From: Laetmonice hystrix
Taxonomy: Eukaryota
Direction: 5' to 3'
Assembly (NCBI GenBank): GCA_965235115.1
Contig: OZ249438.1
Location: forward strand, 8,246,001-8,310,000
Length of the DNA stretch: 64,000 bases
Below the pieces are notes generated by a model. The model was given only the letters and a program-made list of their open reading frames with translations, was not told the origin of the DNA and did not search any database. Position numbers and translations under genes: made by a program. Position 1 is the first letter of the stretch, and each line of letters starts with the position of its first letter. Positions 16,020 through 62,825 of this stretch are shown here, in pieces.

Positions 16020-17000
16020 ATGGCCGAGTTGAAGGAGCGAGGTTGGAGTCCATCTTCCCCAGCCTTCCCCATCAACAATAACACCACAAAGGACGAGGTA
16101 CAACTGGACATGTCGGGGGCCGCCACCGGGGATGAGGGTTACCGGAACGGCCAACCTTACGGCACCACCACGGCCACCGATACGGCCGTGGGCTGGGGAC
16201 CGGCTGGGACCGGCGGACCCAGAGCTAGCACCGCCACCAGGGCCGGTAGAGCCAAGGGGTGTACCTGTAACCGCCACGGCTGTGGGCCAATACTGGCCAG
16301 CGGCCTGGCATACTTCGGAGCGGCCCTGATGTTTCTATTCAGCGTCAACTTTGCATCGCTGCCAAAAGCGCCGTTTCCAGTAATCGGGAATGCGTTACCC
16401 CAGACATACTGGCTTGTGTCGGATGAAGCGATCTTGATTCCGATGATAGCTTGGGGCGTGCATTATCTGCGCAGGTTTGGGGAGGTGCTTTTTGTTCATG
16501 ACTACCGAAGATCCATGCCGTGTGGGGAGTCGATCGGAGCGTCCGTTTATTACTGGGGGTTTGGATTCTGGATTGGCTACTCGGTGAACTTCAAGCTTGG
16601 GTACTTGACCCCCACCTGGCCTTTCCTGGCGCCTGGCCTTATCCTGTTTGTCGTGGGAGAAGTAGGCAACTGTGCGGTCCACCTGGCCCAGCGTCAACTG
16701 CGAAGAAGGCCAGGAAGCGAGTCTGTGATGTCACCTTCAGGAAACCAGCATGTTATCCCGACTGGTTTCCTGTTTAAATACGTGTCCTGCCCAAACTACA
16801 CGTTTGAGATCATTACCTGGATCGGGTTCGGCCTGATCGCGTTTACATTACCCGCCGCACTGTTTCTTATAGCCTCAATAACAACTTTGGTCATCTACGC
16901 TCACAAAAAACACAAAGGCTACAAGGCAGAATTCGACGGGGAGGATGGAAGGCCGCTTTATCCACCCAAACGGAAAGCCCTAATTCCATTCATATTCTAA
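16020..17000 (+). CDS. TECR-like / steroid 5-alpha-reductase family (3-oxo-5-alpha-steroid 4-dehydrogenase domain) membrane enzyme, intronless, 326 aa
   Basis: ACCATGG Kozak with an in-frame stop at 16005. TECR/Tsc13-type motifs HYLRRFGEVLFVH, YYWGFGFWIGY, GNCAVHLAQRQLR, FKYVSCPNYTFEI and KKHKGY...YPPKRKALIPFIF; several hydrophobic helices. Confidence 0.9.
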   Translation: MAELKERGWSPSSPAFPINNNTTKDEVQLDMSGAATGDEGYRNGQPYGTTTATDTAVGWGPAGTGGPRASTATRAGRAKGCTCNRHGCGPILASGLAYFGAALMFLFSVNFASLPKAPFPVIGNALPQTYWLVSDEAILIPMIAWGVHYLRRFGEVLFVHDYRRSMPCGESIGASVYYWGFGFWIGYSVNFKLGYLTPTWPFLAPGLILFVVGEVGNCAVHLAQRQLRRRPGSESVMSPSGNQHVIPTGFLFKYVSCPNYTFEIITWIGFGLIAFTLPAALFLIASITTLVIYAHKKHKGYKAEFDGEDGRPLYPPKRKALIPFIF

Positions 17001-25370: not shown

Positions 25371-27166
25371 ATGGCAGCGGGATCCATGAGGTGTCAGTTA
25401 GGCCGGCCTGGATCAGTCAGTTTGCTGACCGGCCTCTTGTTGATAGCGCTGCTCCAGGCCTACAATGGGTTGGCGAGGGCGGAAGAAGCGGCGGCTCCGG
25501 CCGAGGTGGCCAAGGAGGAGGACGAGGAAGTGCTAGTGGGCGATAAGAACTGTACAGCGTTAGCGTCACAATGCAAATCGGGATACATGCTACCAATGTG
25601 GACCCCTCAGGGCAACCTGAGTGTTGGCGACAAAGCAGCGCGTGCCACTGTCTATTTTGCTGCGATGGTGTTCATGTTTTTAGGTGTTTCCATCATTGCG
25701 GATCGTTTCATGGCAGCTATAGAAGTGATCACATCCAAAGAACGAGAAGTGACTATTAAAAAACCGAATGGTGAAACGGCCGTTGTGAGTGTCAGAATAT
25801 GGAATGAAACAGTGTCCAACTTAACCCTCATGGCTCTGGGTTCGTCGGCTCCAGAAATCTTGTTGTCTGTTATTGAGATCATTGGTAATAAATTCGAGGC
25901 GGGAGACTTGGGGCCCAGTACGATCGTAGGTAGTGCAGCCTTCAACCTTTTCATCATCATTGGTTTATGCATCTACGTCATCCCCGATGGCGAAGTGCGA
26001 AGAATTAAACATCTGCGAGTGTTCTTCATCACCGCAAGTTGGAGTATATTCGCCTACCTATGGATGTACTTGATTATCTCCGTCTTCTCACCCGGAGAGG
26101 TCGAGGTTTGGGAAGGTATTCTAACCTTCTTCTTCTTCCCTGCCACAGTCATCACGGCATACATCGCTGATCGCAAGATCTTCTTCGGCAACTTTCTGTC
26201 TAAGCGCTATAGAGCAAGCAAGCACAAATCTGTCGTGATCACAGAGGGCGATATGGAACTCGGGGAGAAAAATCACGTCGGCGATGATGTCATCTTCAAG
26301 GGACTCGACTCAGAGGACGTAGAAATCCGAGAGTTTGAGCGTCACCGGAAAGACTTCATCGAGATCTTGCGTGACTTGAGAAAGAAACACCCGAACGTCG
26401 ACATGCGCACTCTGGAAGAAATGGCGGAGTTGGAAGCGATGAATCGTGGTCCCAAAAGTCGTGCTTTCTATCGCATTCAGGCAACGAGAAAGTTAACCGG
26501 AGGGGGGGCAGTCATCAAGAAGTCTAAAATCGAACGGAAATCAAGCCTGCAGGATGTTAAGGTCGACCTGCCAGAGGACGATAGCATTACGCGGATCTTC
26601 TTCGAACCTGGACACTACACGGTCATGGAGAACGTGGGAACCTTTGCCCTGACCGTCTCAAGGGTCGGCGGAAACTTAGAGAACACAGTTTACGTAGACT
26701 ACAGGACCGAGGATGGCACCGCGAATGCCGGCTCTGACTACGAATATGCGGAAGGAACCTTGGTATTCCACCCGTCGGAGCAACACAAACAATTCTCGAT
26801 CACCATCATCGACGACGACATCTTCGAGGAAGATGAGCACTTCTACGTGCGCCTCTCAAACATCAGGGTCGGTGACGCCGACGGCATGTTCACCAGCAGC
26901 TCACAGGAGTCGAAGGCGCAGCTCGCCAACCCTTCCATGGCCACCGTCATGATTCTGGATGATGATCACGCCGGTATTTTCCACTTTGAGCAGACGGAGC
27001 TGTCGCTATCCGAATCTGTGGGAGAGGCAGCTGTCAAAGTTTGCCGTTCATCGGGAGCTCGTGGCCAGGTGAAGCTACCCTATCGCACAGTGGAAGGCTC
27101 AGCTAAAGGGGGCAAGGATTACGAGGACTCCGTCGGGGAACTGGTCTTCGAGAACGACCAAACTGA
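25371..27166 (+). CDS. SLC8A: Na+/Ca2+ exchanger (NCX, SLC8 family), giant first coding exon; gene incomplete in this window
   Basis: Signal peptide; alpha-1 repeat [16 protein letters not shown] and [14 protein letters not shown]; XIP-like basic segment; Calx-beta CBD1 ([21 protein letters not shown]) and the start of CBD2. Exon 25322-27166 is bounded by TTTCATCTTGCAG| and GA|GTGAGT (phase 2); the ORF-track stop at 27170 is intronic. Confidence 0.97.
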
Positions 27167-29144
27167 GTGAGTACAACCTGTTTCACATTCCGGGTTTCTC
27201 AGGATTCAAGTACCAGAGTATATACATCGACACTGGAATAGAAACTTTAGCCTCACTGAGTAAAATAGTTGCAAAGACTCATAGTTTTATAGTGAGCAAA
27301 GTTTGAAAAGGGTCAAATCATCAAAGTAGTTTTGATGCTGGAACAGTGCTAAAGAGCAGGCTTCGTATGGGTGGCTGAGGTCATGAAAAGTCGTGGCATT
27401 TCACGTCGACGAAATGCCAGCCTGGAAATAATGAAAAACAAATACTTGGAAATAGGCTTGGCCATCTTGAAGCTGATTTGAAACATATTTATGACCATTC
27501 TAACTCATGACAACATATCGACTCCACAACGTCTTGATGACCTTACTGGTAGTTCACGGGAAAGGTTCTTTTACATGACTCAGCAGTATACTTACCCTAT
27601 AGTACGGTGTCGTCAACCATCTGGAAAGAAAAAGTTGAGTCTTTGGTTTCAGAGTTAGCTAAAAATTTGGCTTTGTCAGCGTATATATTGGGTCATAAAA
27701 AGCTTAGCTCATTAACAGACACAGAGCAAGATCAGGCGTAAAGAAGGCCAGACATACAGTAACTGTTTACATTCTAAACCTATCACGTGTACGTAGTGGG
27801 TACAAGTTGTATGACCGCTTTCCTAGAAAGCTAAAAAACCGAGTCAAATTTTTCCTGTGGCATATTTTCTCAATCAGCTAGTTTCGTCTGCGAAAGTGGA
27901 GGTTGTTAGTATCAGTTCATCCCGTTACATTGATAGGGATCTACCAAAATACAAAATACATGCGCTTTACTTAATCAGTTAGCTCAGATAATACAGCAGT
28001 CATAAATTGTTTGTTTCTCTGGTTTACAGTCAAAGTGCTCATTATGACAAGAAAACTAATATTAGCGTGACAAGTCAGTGTAGGTGACGCAACGGAATGT
28101 TGCCGTAATTTCTCTGGTTGGTTCATTGCTATGAAGTTTTCGGAATGTTCGACCAGTGCGCACTGCCAAACTTTGCTGTTGTGAGTTTTAGAAAAAATGC
28201 GAATTACACTAATTGCTGTGAACATGGTCCTCCCCGTGTTCTCAGTCCCTCTGAATGACTCCATGAACCATGCCACAGTGGTACCAACCACACAAGTTTC
28301 CTTTGATCCATAACTTGACCCAAGCAAAGTTTTCAATCACAACATTCGTATTTGTACCCATATATCACATAATGATGAGGGAGCAGTCGTTATTATCCTT
28401 TTCATGTTGACAGTTTTAGAGTTAATGGAGCATGTATTGATTTCCTTATTGATTCCATTTACAATATTGTCCTTCCCTAACCCCTGTCCTGACGCTCAGA
28501 TCTATACTGTCAGTCGACCTCTATTGACCTTTGCTAGACAGATGATTTACAAGTTTCTTGAGTGCTACCCACATGTAGAAGTTGTAGGTGGGAGGTGGGA
28601 GGGGGTCAACCCCCTGTCAGTAAGGAACCAAGTGTTCTCAATCGATCCGAACTAGTAAATATAAACAATCACTGCTGTGGGTGGTATTCTCTCCTGTTTG
28701 ACAGGTTTGTAAACTAACCTCCTGTAGAAATATGATTGTCCAAGGAAGTTTCAAAAACATTGGAGCTGGGATTGCATGACACGTAGATCTTTTTGGGGAG
28801 GTTAGTTGATTGATGCAATGTTCTACTATCTTTAAGGTCATACCATTTCATGTGCTAGTTGATAACCGAACGGTGGGACGGTTACTTACTGTACGTGGGT
28901 ACTCTCTTCATCTTCCACGGATGAGGTCTCAAATAGAGAACTACACATGGCTGGTCATGCTCGGAACTTGTCAGTGGGGATATGTCGGGGTAAAACTTTT
29001 ACATGGCGATGGGCAGTGTTTGTCCTGATGACTACACGTGTGCTGACCAGCTGTCGAGCAGATGGCATACATGTATATTAGTGGGGGTCTATTCATATAG
29101 CCCTGATAGCCGATCCTAACCAAACAGGAGAAATGGATGTCCAG

Positions 29145-29494: not shown

Positions 29495-32400
29495 CGAAAA
29501 AAAACCCCACCCCTCTGATCCCCGGATCATGCGTTTTGTCATGATTACTGGATATAAAGTTAAAGGAATAAAAAACGGAGTTTAAGGGAGTTAAGGGAGT
29601 CCTTCTTTGGGGTTGAGCTTTACGGAAAGGTTTACAGAGCCGTCCATTCAAGTGTACAGTGTGATGAAGATAGGTTTATTTAGGACCTCCATTGAGTACT
29701 TCTAGTTCTCTCATGTTAAACGATGCATGGCATGATTCGTACGGTTAGGGTAGGACTATAATGTGATGGGTGGTAGATCTGTTAATTACTTAATGCGTTT
29801 CAGGTATCGACCTGCCCAAGGAAGGGATTCATGCGTGAACTTGTAAGCGGCCACCTTTTGACAAAAAGGTCAATCAAATTATGTTGGCTAGGATTCATGT
29901 TTACACAGCATGCTGTCAGGGTTGGCAGCTTGAACGTGTTTCAGTGCTGGATGGGACATAACATGGGGCGAGGTCTTGATGTAATGGTTTAGAAATTACC
30001 TTTCTGTGTGATCATATATTTACATCCGAGTTTGGGGGAGGTGATCCTTGCAAACAAAATACATGTATCACACAACAGGCACGTGTCCAACATTTTCAGC
30101 AGGGGAGGGGTCAGAAAATCTTTAAAAATTATGAGGCGCGATTTCCCGCCATTTAGGGGGCATTTTAGGGCATTATATTTTTGTGGATTCATCGCTCAAC
30201 GGGTTCAAAACGGCGGGAATGCTTCGAACGTGCTATCTATGCTCTGGGGGGAGTGAGGGGGTCTGGACTCTCTGGACCCCCCCCCCCCCACGACACAAGA
30301 AACAACAAAAAAAACTGGGGAAAAGTTAGAGACGGTGCATACAGGAAACGGATTGGCCTATATTGGTATCTCTGCATGACATCCGTTATGGCCTGTCTTG
30401 TTTTCCATTCGTTCATCAAATGGTCTGTCTGTTTCCCGTAACATGCTGGAGTGTGGTCACACTATTAATTTTCGTACATTGCATTAAATGGTCTGCCTTG
30501 ATTACCGTCCATTACAACAAGCTGGCTTTATTTTCTGTAAATGAAATGGATGCCCATTTCGCATGTGTGCATCGAATGGCTTATCGTCTTTTGCAGCACA
30601 ATAATAGTTCAGTTAAAGTAGTGTTTGGTACCCCCAGTTCCATCTTGTAATGGTTCCTCTAGCCGCTACGATTATACATGTACTTTCTGTCGGTCTATTC
30701 TGGCAACCTTCGGCGGTTTCTCTTCGGCAATGTTCGGCGGTTTCCGGCGATTGAGAAACACCTCTGGTACATTAGCTTCACCCCCTAATCAGGGAAAAAC
30801 GAAGGGGCGCGGATTCTGCAGGCAGTGAACAGTCTACAATATAGTCCACTAGGGAATTTAAAATTTTCGCCAACGAATTCCTATGTTACATCGATTATGA
30901 ATTGTGGTTCTTATGTACAGCATCTACCAGCAAGATTTGATAATGTTCAGGTATTGGAATGGCATTAATACGCTCTATTATGTTTGAAGCCATCTGGCAA
31001 TCTTCGGCAGGTGCTCGTTGGCAATTTCCGTCACCAGAATTTCCGACAGCGGTCGCCAAACTGCAATAGACAGTGACTGGTCTCTTGCCTAACAGACGCG
31101 TCCCCTATGTTAGGACAGGCATTGGGTAATTTCACTTGTCAGAAATCCGACAAGCGGAAGGAAGTTGCTCAAACTTCCACAGCAGAAAACTTCCGCTTCC
31201 ATTGCGTTGGTCAGCGTCACCTGGGAGTGATCGATCTCTGGTCGGAGAGTGGGCAACATGGCCATGCGTGATGCAGGCCGTATAGCCTGGTGTAAGGGCC
31301 CATGACACTATATCTACACCTAGAAACGCGAGAACATGTAACATTTGTATTGTAAAAAGACTGACGAAAATATCTGTATCTTCTTGGAGAAATCCGGAGG
31401 ATATGGATCTACCATCGACGTTTGTGTCCATGTTTTTGATGAGCCAATCACAGCGCGCACTTCGATTAGTCTTCGCCAGTCTCTACATCAATAGAGCTGG
31501 GGACCAGTCTACAAACTAAAAAGAAAGACTAGTGAGCCACAATCCACCAGAGGTAATTTTATCGCCGCTTGGGGGCCAGAGTGGTCTATCTCTTCAGATG
31601 TTGCATCTTTATGGTCCTTCTATTTCAGCTGCCCCAAACCTTTGTAAAGTTTATGAGACCTTTAAAGACTGCACTCTGTGTCCTAGTGATATTTCTGGTG
31701 TGCTCTCATTTTCAGTTACCCCAAGTTGTTTTCCCAGATAGAGTTGTGGTCTAAAGTTACTCGTTCTCTTGATTCATTTTCCGCTATCCGCTGTTTTTGC
31801 AAACATCGACCTGCCACGAATACCGTGTTGGGTTCCTGGTAGTTGACCGGTCTGCCGATAGAGGTCACTGTTTAAGCTGGTCCTCAAGGTGAGTCGGCCG
31901 AGGAGTGGCAGATATTGCTCATCCGATCCGGGGAGCAAGGTGGACATGATAAATAAATGCCACCTCGGTCTTGGTTTGGTCTATGTGGTGGCTTGTTGTT
32001 GGAGGGTACGTGTTGACTGGGCGGTCGGTCGCCCCTGGGTACTTTCTTCATGTTAAGATATCCACGAAATCATCAAGGTAAGCGGTTAGCAGTGGAACTA
32101 CGTGGACATGGATACATTTTATATGGGGGAGGTCTAGGGACCGGGTTTCACGGGTTAGTGTTAACTTCAGGGCTAGGACTATTGAAAGATTTCGACTTAA
32201 TCTCCCCAAGGTTTGGTGGAGAAGTTTCCATAGGTGATGTATCCACTGGGCTGCCTGTAGCCGCCCAGCTCGCCGCCCGTGCCCCTCCAGCCTCGCCCTA
32301 TTTTAAGAAAGCGTCATCTTACCTTGGCCCCAGGAAGAGGATGCACTGGTACCCAGATCCAGCGGCAGCTCCCTTGACCATGTGTATGCCGACTGGAATC

Positions 32401-58500: not shown

Positions 58501-61500
58501 TTTATTGATTTTTCATCTGAAGTGCAGCATTGATGACGAATCCAAGTGCAGCGCATTTATACACTTATGTATGATTGGTGCACCGTCTGCTGCGCTAGTT
58601 CACCGATTGTATTGACCAGTGTGGCAAGGCCAGCCCCATCCGTTCTTTGCTATGTACCGATACGGAACAGAAACGGCCGAAGTATGCACTGCCATTCATT
58701 GCCATTGATCTCTTCGTTGAGAAAATCAGGTCAGTGCACAGAATGGGGGAAGAAACCGCCAATTTAAGGCAACTCGCGTAATTAGAGCTACATCTTGGAA
58801 ATTAAAGAGTCCCTATCTTATCTGTTTCAAAATTATGATATAGGACCCATATAACTACAGCAAAATATATGGTTCGTTTAGGAAAAATACACCAGCTTCT
58901 GTAGCAGAGGAACTCTAACTTGATATGTATAGGCTCCATAATGTTTTCTTATATACTACACTGTAGCTACAGGCAATACAATATACACATGTAGAACGCA
59001 TTACGCCCAGAATCTGTTGCCTTGGTTCTGCTGATTTTCGAAGAGAAAAAACATCCACCTCAATGCGGAAGGGACGGGTCCTGGACATATTGATTCAGAG
59101 CAGTGGCCATGAACAAATATCTATTGCTAACAAAAGTGTGCTTATTCTGCATTGACTTGATTGTCTCTCAGTCTGCGTCAAATCATGTTAATTCATTTTA
59201 GACTCATTTTTTACTTCCTTAATGCTAACAGTAAAATCCTGATTACGACATTCATTTAACATTTTAAGTTTTGGCAAACATTCGTATTTTAAACGAATTC
59301 ATACCTCCGTAAATCCTTTACATAATTTTTAAACCATATTTTTGACTTGTAGGCAGATGTATTGAAATAGATCAATACAAATTTGCGTTTTTACCACTGG
59401 ATTGGGGGGTGGGGGGGGGGGGTGGTGGAGGTCCAACTGACTGTATCCTGAGTGAGGAATAGACAGACTGTGACGTCTGACAGCGCTGCGGAAAGTGGAT
59501 GATGAGTTTATTATTGTCTGACCAAAACACGAACAGCTTCGGTTGGAAGCATGAGGGACCATTGAATTCCTGTCATTGCATCGTTTGGTGATAAACATAT
59601 TTTTTATGAGGGTATACAATGGGGAAATAGGCTATGAATGTCATGTATTGTAATCCAGTTATGTTAAGTAATAATGTGCGGTATGCTTTGCTTTCAAACA
59701 TGGCCAGTCTACATGCAGTATGACCAGGGTTGTTGATTGTTGTTGAATTAGACTAATTTATGAGTTTACTTAACCCTAACCCTACAGCAAGTTGTTCTAC
59801 CTAGGCTCAGCTCCAGGAAATCAAAATATGATGGGTTTACGAACTTCCCCGAGGGCTTCCGATGTAGAAATCGGGTATTTCCGGTGTCATCTATACGGCC
59901 TTGACGTCACAAGGGGAATAACACCCTGGTGTGACACATAATGAGATATAGCTGCAGGACCAGTATTAACACATGACGTATGCCACCTGCTAATTATGTG
60001 ACAGGTGGGGCGAGAGAAACTAAACTCAGATCATGAACTGGTGTGGGTTATTTCTGTATCGGAGGTTGGCAATCCTGCCCAAGATCAATTTGTATCGACT
60101 CGAACTTCGTCCTCAGTGCCCTGGGCAGTTTGCCGGCCAGCTAGCGTTAGCTCATACATGAATTAAAGGATGCTGGCCAGACCTGGTGTCGTGCCCGCAA
60201 GGGTGTGGGTGTGTGAGTGTACATGGTGTTTGTACACAGGCACGTGAGCATCTGTTTTTGTAATGTAAAGGAAAAACATCTAGTACCAGCAAGTGGATTA
60301 TAACGCCATATTAGAATATATTAATGGAAATATATTTTATTTTAACCGATATTAAGTTGATTCTAACCGCTTTAAACAGGACTACTGGAGACAACATGCT
60401 GAGGGAAATATGATAATGTAGAAGCAGTTCTGGTGGATTTATACATGCAAGTAAATCTTGTATGCAGTGAGTTTCTTTAGTGAGCCTATCTTCAAGTAGA
60501 ATAGAAGATGCTAGATATTCCATGGAATAATAAAGACCAGAAAGATAAAGAAAATATCCCAGTATGGATCCGTAATATAAGAATCCGGTATGTATATGGC
60601 TGTTGAGCGTGTTAATCTACCCAGAGAATGTGTAAATTGTTTGGTGATACACCAATCCGAGTTCAGTTTTATCAGAATAAGTGCCAGGACAAACCTAATA
60701 TGGCCCTGAGATGGCGTTATCAGGCCGAGCTGAGCGCCTCAACCCTCGCAAAGCTGCAACGATTGCTTGTCAATCAGGCGTGAAATGATGTCAGCGAAGT
60801 GGCGTGGGTCTCATCGCATGCCACCCCCACCCGCCATCTCTACCATACACCCCAGGGGGCGGGGGGGGGGGGGGGAGGGGGTAAGATCACATAAGGGATG
60901 TATCTTGTCTCGTGATGTGTAGGGAGAATTTTGTATGGTTTACTGCCTTCAGCACTAAATATGATCAGGGAGGCTGTGCTAGTAAATTAGCTAAATAAGG
61001 TAAAGTCATGAACGGAATTAAGTTTTCAAAGGTCAAATATAAAACTAAAGTAACGTCAGATTTACAGCCTGAAAAGATATATCACCTGGGTAATTGTTTA
61101 TTAGGATTTGGTTCACATTTAGAATATTCTTAAAACCTTATTTTGTATACAGTGAAATTTGAGGCATGGAGACATTAACGTGGGGTATATGAAGTATACA
61201 GAACTGCGCAGATCGAACATCAGTTTGGCAGCAAAAGTTCCCTCCCGCGGGCTGTAGGCGTACAAAAAGAGTTGCGTAATGGTGGCGTGACATCAATTCA
61301 GCTTAGGGGCCGGAGGTGAAAACGTTTGACTTCCGTTACGTCAAATTGTTCATTGTGACCAGACTCGCGACCTGTATCGTCAGATGGTGGTGTCTGTCGG
61401 TTCTAATGATATAAACGACAGTATATATTAACAGCATGTACGACACATCCTTTCAAAAACTCTTTCCGAAAAGATTTCCTCCACGCCAACATTCGATGGT

Positions 61501-62726: not shown

Positions 62727-62825
62727 TCTGACTGTTCTTTCCTTTTGTTTCAGGTAAGTATCATGATACGTTGTCTGGTTGCCGTTCAAGGCTGCTTGCA
62801 GACCAACCAGATGGTTAAGGTATGT
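62727..62825 (+). other. Candidate recursive splice site (ratchet point) with a downstream 66-nt RS-exon
   Basis: Branch-like CTGAC at 62728-62732, pyrimidine tract TGTTCTTTCCTTTTGTTT, CAG|GTAAGT at 62753/62754, and a second donor AAG|GTATGT at 62819/62820. Confidence 0.65.

Follow-up and report, generated by a model that had tools for sequence, protein, structure and literature searches.

How is the 162.9-kb intron of a Na+/Ca2+ exchanger (NCX) gene removed, in a single step or in several? The question is raised by a junction at 62753/62754 (the slash marks a splice junction), deep within this intron, at which an acceptor is immediately followed by a perfect donor and which a first-pass annotation had read as a recursive splice site, or ratchet point. 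To our knowledge, recursive splicing has been proved experimentally only in Drosophila and vertebrates, and it has been inferred computationally in a few insects and the sea urchin. In Drosophila, ratchet points and zero-nucleotide recursive splicing are known from Ubx, kuz and luna (Burnette 2005; bioRxiv 10.1101/006163; PMC8605326). The fly ratchet points carry TT at -6/-5 in 99.5% of cases versus 44% of ordinary introns, they are associated with a cryptic exon that is constitutively recognised, unconserved and stop-bearing, and their donor usually wins by strength (bioRxiv 10.1101/006163; PMC8605326). A sense-strand excess of combined acceptor-donor sites was found in the large introns of insects and the sea urchin, and no sense-strand enrichment of the motif in those of vertebrates (Shepard et al. 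2009, PMC2773006).

The NCX gene and its long intron

The window, i.e. the whole stretch of 64,000 nt that was analysed, corresponds to C3:8246001-8310000, and coordinates marked "ext" carry the same numbering past 64,000 nt. The long intron starts from the following features:

25371 to 27166, plus strand: giant coding exon of NCX (SLC8-type Na+/Ca2+ exchanger), from the ATG to the donor, phase 2, ending in ...ACT GA
27164 to 27174, plus strand: native 5' splice site of the long intron, TGA/GTGAGTAC (GA/GTGAGT), U1 duplex -7.1 kcal/mol

Translation of the giant exon is uninterrupted over its 598 codons. The protein is 74-90% identical to the NCX of annelids and other spiralians and carries the domains PF01699, PF03160 and PF16494, and the end of the exon, ...ENDQT(E), is kept in all the relatives compared. 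In a single-gene tree, it branched among annelids, in a clade including all four named annelids (support 94/96), with nemerteans and molluscs outside this clade. We thus consider the host lineage to be probably an annelid. The gene is presumably expressed in neurons and muscle.

Since the next NCX-homologous exon (AFIKVRIVDDEEYEKNETFF...) is located at C3:8436106, the intron measures 162,939 nt (27167 to ext 190105), 126 kb of which lie past the end of the window. No NCX-like exon was detected between 27167 and ext 190105 in tblastn searches with three full-length NCX proteins.

Three other features of the region were observed around this gene. About 8 kb 5' of the NCX start codon, an ORF of 326 codons (16020-17000, plus strand) encodes a 3-oxo-5-alpha-steroid 4-dehydrogenase domain (PF02544, E = 4e-27). 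Further downstream, two adjacent exons, ext 210248-210421 and 210944-211102 (C3:8456248-8456421 and 8456944-8457102), both match NCX residues ~734-790, and the same pair is present in the relative described below (rel 87414-87575 and 88348-88524), which suggests that two mutually exclusive exons of the second transmembrane block have been conserved. Finally, the 3' end of the intron is occupied by a 99-nt tandem array with 7.0 copies and 98% matches (C3:8435440-8436133; ext 189440-190133), whose unit contains a branch-like CTGACC motif, a pyrimidine tract, a CAG acceptor, the first 29 nt of the real exon and then G/GTAACT. As each unit carries an acceptor, six near-identical decoy acceptors precede the productive one. 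The relative is devoid of this array, which may be a chance overlap, the genome being minisatellite-rich.

The junctions in the intron and in its orthologs

The junction from which we started, designated RS1, is composed of the following elements:

27167 to 62753, plus strand: first intron segment, 35,587 nt, which would leave as the first lariat
62728 to 62732, plus strand: branch-point-like CTGAC, a motif match only, with its A at 62731, 22 nt before the AG
62733 to 62753, plus strand: pyrimidine tract and CAG acceptor, with TT at -6/-5
62754 to 62761, plus strand: putative regenerating donor GTAAGTAT, 8 contiguous bp to the U1 5' end, -7.5 kcal/mol
62754 to 62819, plus strand: candidate cryptic RS-exon of 66 nt, which after the giant exon would read GAG TAA, an immediate stop
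62817 to 62825, plus strand: donor of the RS-exon, AAG/GTATGT (62819/62820), PWM score 9.7, U1 duplex -8.4 kcal/mol

The elements that the first-pass annotation had listed, namely the CTGAC 22 nt 5' of the AG, the pyrimidine tract leading to CAG and GTAAGT at 35.6 kb past the NCX donor, and the second donor 66 nt downstream, were all recovered at these positions. Its statement that the segment joined to the phase-2 giant exon would give GAG TAA was also correct; given the exon phase and GTAAGT or GTGAGT, this stop is automatic and constitutes no separate feature. The tract proper (62733-62751) comprises 19 nt with two G, and 16 of the 18 positions from -20 to -3 are pyrimidines. The junction reads TTCTTTCCTTTTGTTTCAG/GTAAGTAT, which matches (Y)nNCAG/GTAAGT with a combined acceptor and donor score of 14.1, and the giant exon joined to it would give TGA/GTAAGTAT. 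RS1 is the sole pyrimidine-rich AG/GTRAGT junction on both strands of the 64-kb window, and its region is single-copy. The weaker AG/GT candidate that the same annotation had proposed at 29803/29804 was not retained, on account of its poor tract and its GTATCG donor; its score also falls outside the top ten.

Three DNA runs from one sample covered the region at an even depth of 25-55x, without joints and with ~1.4% differences relative to the assembly. They differ from the assembly at 62803, 62804 and 62808, within the RS-exon, and none of the differences listed falls in 62728-62761. Two contigs of these runs break at 62738 and 62758, corresponding to divergence just before 62738 and just after 62758, as would be expected of a divergent haplotype with different flanks but with the tract and the AG/GTAAG core in common. 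Because of the break at 62738, the conservation of CTGAC is uncertain, and this motif may be absent in the divergent haplotype. Elsewhere in the window, at 60801-61000, the depth of the DNA-run contigs increases from ~40 to up to 8284, and several contigs break at 60861-60880, which points to a short repeat with a very high copy number.

We scanned both strands of 224 kb for AG/GTRAG with at least 13 pyrimidines out of 18. The scan retrieved five sites on the sense strand and none on the antisense strand:

ext 62753, plus strand: RS1, the first ratchet-point candidate
ext 95150 (C3:8341150), plus strand: RS2, score 9.6, with GTGAGT
ext 119616 (C3:8365616), plus strand: RS3
ext 145806 (C3:8391806), plus strand: RS4
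ext 175774 (C3:8421774), plus strand: RS5

These sites divide the intron into six segments of 35.6, 32.4, 24.5, 26.2, 30.0 and 14.3 kb. The sites are regularly spaced: under random placement, the longest segment would be at most 35.6 kb with a probability of 0.0027. Combined acceptor and donor scores, computed with generic splice-site matrices not trained on this species, were 16.1, 14.9, 14.1, 12.1 and 9.6 for the five sites, compared with 6.0 for the runner-up sense site and a maximum of 5.3 on the antisense strand of the NCX intron. In first-order Markov resamples (5-kb blocks, n = 400), 0.14 sites scoring at least 9.6 were expected and the maximum was three, versus the five observed. A real control sequence of 349 kb yielded one site scoring at least 9.6, and the top scores in the gene flanks, the short downstream introns and Capitella were at most 6.5. 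RS2, with its score of 9.6 and its GTGAGT, is the least secure of the five sites.

The sites also resemble each other in their surroundings. TT at -6/-5 and A at +7 were present in six out of six sites (the five sites of this intron and that of the relative). A donor scoring at least 8.5 was found between +30 and +100 in five of these six, versus a background of 0.043 of the intron positions (binomial P = 8e-7); these donors are located at +66 (RS1), +52, +36, +98 and +40 (the site of the relative). Four of the five sites of the present intron thus have a good donor 36-98 nt downstream, RS2 having weaker ones only, at +55 and +75. A branch-like CTGAC or CTAAT is located 20-35 nt 5' of four sites, CTAAT being the form found at RS2, RS4 and RS5. 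The five sites have mutually unrelated flanks and the RS1 region is single-copy; they are therefore no copies of a single repeat, and a repeat or transposon origin could be discarded on the same grounds. Downstream of RS4 there are 15 copies of a 52-nt unit with CAG/GTAGGA in each (ext 145811-146590), and downstream of RS5 two copies of a 40-nt unit with GAT/GTAAGA in each (ext 175777-175857); the cryptic-exon regions being tandem repeats in these two cases, RS4 and RS5 have several candidate donors downstream.

For comparison, we used the closest available genome (ENA ERZ25767047, contig ctg38566; 90% protein identity), in which the contig was walked via called ORFs. The donor codon is conserved in this relative, TGA/GTAAGTGA (TGA/GTAAGT), and the orthologous NCX intron measures 59,974 nt. 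It contains exactly one strong sense site, TTTGTTCTTTTATCTTTCAG/GTAAGTAT (TTTCAG/GTAAGTAT), with a score of 12.1 and a donor at +40. The conservation proposed as a check in the first-pass annotation was thus recovered for the motif: this site lies 34,251 nt from the donor, versus 35,587 nt for RS1, and the two have the 14-mer TTTCAGGTAAGTAT in common, for which the chance of an identical copy in the intron of the relative is ~4e-4 by base-composition arithmetic. Alignment of the two introns revealed no match beyond the core motif, the flanks of RS1 and the body of its RS-exon being unaligned; it is consequently by distance only that RS1 and the site of this one relative can be equated as orthologs. 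The intron of the relative also contains one antisense site scoring 10.1, which gives the noise level and from which it follows that scores near 10 can arise by chance.

The orthologous intron of Capitella teleta, 11.1 kb long, contains no such site, its best score being 5.9. The counts of 0, 1 and 5 sites in introns of 11, 60 and 163 kb fit a scenario in which sites would be gained as the intron lengthens. Some 40 different minisatellite arrays (periods 20-334 nt) were counted in the 224-kb region, far more than in the 92 kb of the relative, and it is probably to them that the intron owes much of its expansion from 60 to 163 kb.

A probable stepwise removal and its alternatives

The architecture of the sites, their strand specificity, spacing and rarity, and their recurrence in a relative are observed. 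The reading of RS1 as a ratchet point, as put forward in the first-pass annotation, is supported by the four additional sense sites, their spacing, the downstream donors, the TT dinucleotide and the site of the relative. We consider it quite probable that 62753/62754 is the first of five intronic recursive splice sites of the fly type in the 162.9-kb NCX intron, and the presence of five evenly spaced signals therefore makes a removal of this intron in six steps probable. From the sequence we infer the use of the sites, the order of the steps and the fate of the cryptic exons as follows.

During transcription, the acceptor of RS1 (branch point near 62731, tract and CAG) and the donor at 62819/62820 would define a short cryptic exon. 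The giant exon, whose last base is 27166, would be spliced to 62754, which would release a lariat of 35.6 kb and recreate a donor, TGA/GTAAGTAT. This regenerated donor would then be spliced to the next ratchet point, and the same step would be repeated at C3:8341150, 8365616, 8391806 and 8421774. The last reaction would connect the donor with the real exon at 8436105, and in this way the intron would leave in six pieces of 14-36 kb. If the donor of the cryptic exon were used instead, the mRNA would gain an exon beginning with GAG TAA and would be directed to nonsense-mediated decay.

This last outcome would become the main one if the segments were regulated poison cassette exons, whose stop would lower NCX via nonsense-mediated decay, the juxtaposition of AG and GT being secondary and stepwise removal not their purpose. 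Every cryptic exon indeed starts with GA plus GTAAGT or GA plus GTGAGT, which gives Glu followed by a stop, and for several of them the pairing of the donor with U1 equals or exceeds that of the regenerated donor. As estimated by U1 duplex energies, which are a crude proxy, the regenerated donors range from -7.0 to -7.5 kcal/mol, compared with -7.1 for the native donor. With the same crude proxy, RS1 has a regenerated donor of -7.5 versus -8.4 kcal/mol for the RS-exon donor, and the cryptic-exon donors of RS3 and RS4 reach -9.2 and -10.7 kcal/mol. Some inclusion of poison exons is thus plausible, since the regenerated donors are no stronger than several of those of the cryptic exons. However, a poison exon could do without a perfect donor directly adjoining its acceptor, without five copies at intervals of 24-36 kb and without TT at -6/-5, and the exon bodies are unconserved with lengths varying from 36 to 98 nt. 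We therefore regard regulated poison exons as an unlikely main explanation, and the two readings are compatible, the poison-exon outcome being part of the known RS-exon mechanism.

A second possibility is that the motif is fortuitous, an acceptor-like tract having come to lie beside GTAAGT in a long AT-rich intron without any function. RS1 by itself could be such a chance match: it was chosen by eye among many windows, and several matches would be expected by chance over hundreds of windows. The 13-mer TTYYAGGTAAGTA has 128 copies in the 627-Mb genome, versus 156 for the reversed control, corresponding to ~1 per 9.8 Mb per strand and to ~0.013 copies expected in a 64-kb window, both strands being counted. 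A version of the motif with ten pyrimidines occurs at ~40 loci versus 33 for the control, a 15-copy tandem array being set aside. For these two short versions of the motif, there was no clear excess over the reversed controls across the 627 Mb, which speaks for chance, as does the antisense site scoring 10.1 in the relative. It follows that most isolated copies of the motif are due to chance and that the case rests on the local series. This series is difficult to reconcile with a fortuitous origin. The sense strand of the NCX intron contains three copies of TTYYAGGTAAGTA versus 0.017 expected, and the probability of two further copies given one is 1.4e-4. The five sites are all on the sense strand, with 0.14 expected and never more than three in 400 resamples; they are regularly spaced (P = 0.0027) and followed by donors (P = 8e-7), and the otherwise unalignable intron of the relative has an identical 14-mer at a matching distance (~4e-4). 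Chance thus appears to us a very improbable explanation of the whole. Among the other motif neighbours at most 150 kb apart, nine pairs were on the same strand and one on opposite strands (counted by eye), examples being located at C6:34.76-34.83 Mb and C10:12.47-12.62 Mb; this same-strand clustering would fit the presence, in other long genes, of a minority of functional series.

Long introns need protection from premature cleavage and polyadenylation (U1 telescripting). The sites could accordingly be imagined as non-catalytic landing pads for U1 and U2AF that would block such premature processing, or tether the ends of the intron, and never be spliced. Their extended complementarity to U1, GTAAGTA(T/C), would suit U1 recruitment. 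However, U1 recruitment needs neither an adjoining strong acceptor nor TT at -6/-5, nor a branch-like motif, nor a second donor, and these four features belong to the fly sites that are spliced; we rate this reading, too, as very improbable.

The hypothesis that the junctions are exon boundaries of another sense-strand transcript, coding or non-coding, nested in the NCX intron, is the most improbable of all: the 66-nt segment is open in frame 1 over 22 codons, but this occurs by chance about once in three times, and a zero-length exon flanked on either side by consensus sites and occurring five times would not be ordinary. No ORF with a Pfam domain was found near RS1, and no Rfam family in the window. 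Stepwise removal of the intron accounts for more of the evidence than does chance, factor binding without catalysis or a nested transcript.

Relation to known recursive splicing

The candidate sites of the NCX intron are very similar to the ratchet points of Drosophila. The same (Y)nNCAG/GTAAGT motif with TT at -6/-5 is found in both cases on the sense strand of very long introns, at comparable numbers (five sites in the 108 kb of luna and five in the 163 kb of the NCX intron). In both, there is a short, unconserved and stop-bearing cryptic exon, predicted in our case, with its own donor downstream, and only the motif is conserved between species. There are also differences. The present host is a probable annelid, and the segments (14-36 kb) average 27 kb, versus a mean of 18 kb in flies. 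The regenerated donor would be handicapped by the TGA end of the exon and is not clearly stronger than the donors of the cryptic exons, unlike that of the flies. Finally, two of the cryptic-exon regions are tandemly repeated here, and the present series is known from DNA sequence alone.

In vertebrates, the sites are defined via a downstream RS-exon (Sibley et al. 2015; Blazquez et al. PMC6224609), as proposed here. The inclusion of this exon likewise gives a premature stop, a choice is made between the regenerated donor and that of the RS-exon, and the host gene is long. However, only nine fully suppressed intronic sites have been described in vertebrates, whereas the NCX intron contains a dense, regular and fly-like series. 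The evidence is of the same kind as that used by Shepard et al. (2009), i.e. an excess of combined acceptor-donor sites on the sense over the antisense strand in large introns of invertebrates, derived from genomic sequence. Their analysis included no spiralian and was based on ratios at the genome level, whereas we could resolve a series in one gene and compare it between species.

In the literature that we searched, nothing connected recursive splicing in substance with annelids or molluscs, in agreement with the earlier suggestion that the phenomenon may be undocumented in this lineage. The mechanism is already known, and the lineage (probably annelid) would be new for it. We would tentatively suggest, with somewhat less than even confidence, that zero-nucleotide recursive splicing is an old trait of protostomes, possibly of bilaterians, that is also present in annelids, with sites gained along with intron growth and segments kept at or below ~35 kb.

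The cryptic exons are predicted to be poison exons, and annotation as well as RNA-seq analyses should not call them coding. If recursive splicing is confirmed, the NCX introns would provide a natural series on what limits the length of single-step splicing, in which site number may increase with the length of the intron. A five-site series in a spiralian, together with the site of its relative and the lack of any in a short intron, indicates that the mechanism may be widespread in protostomes.
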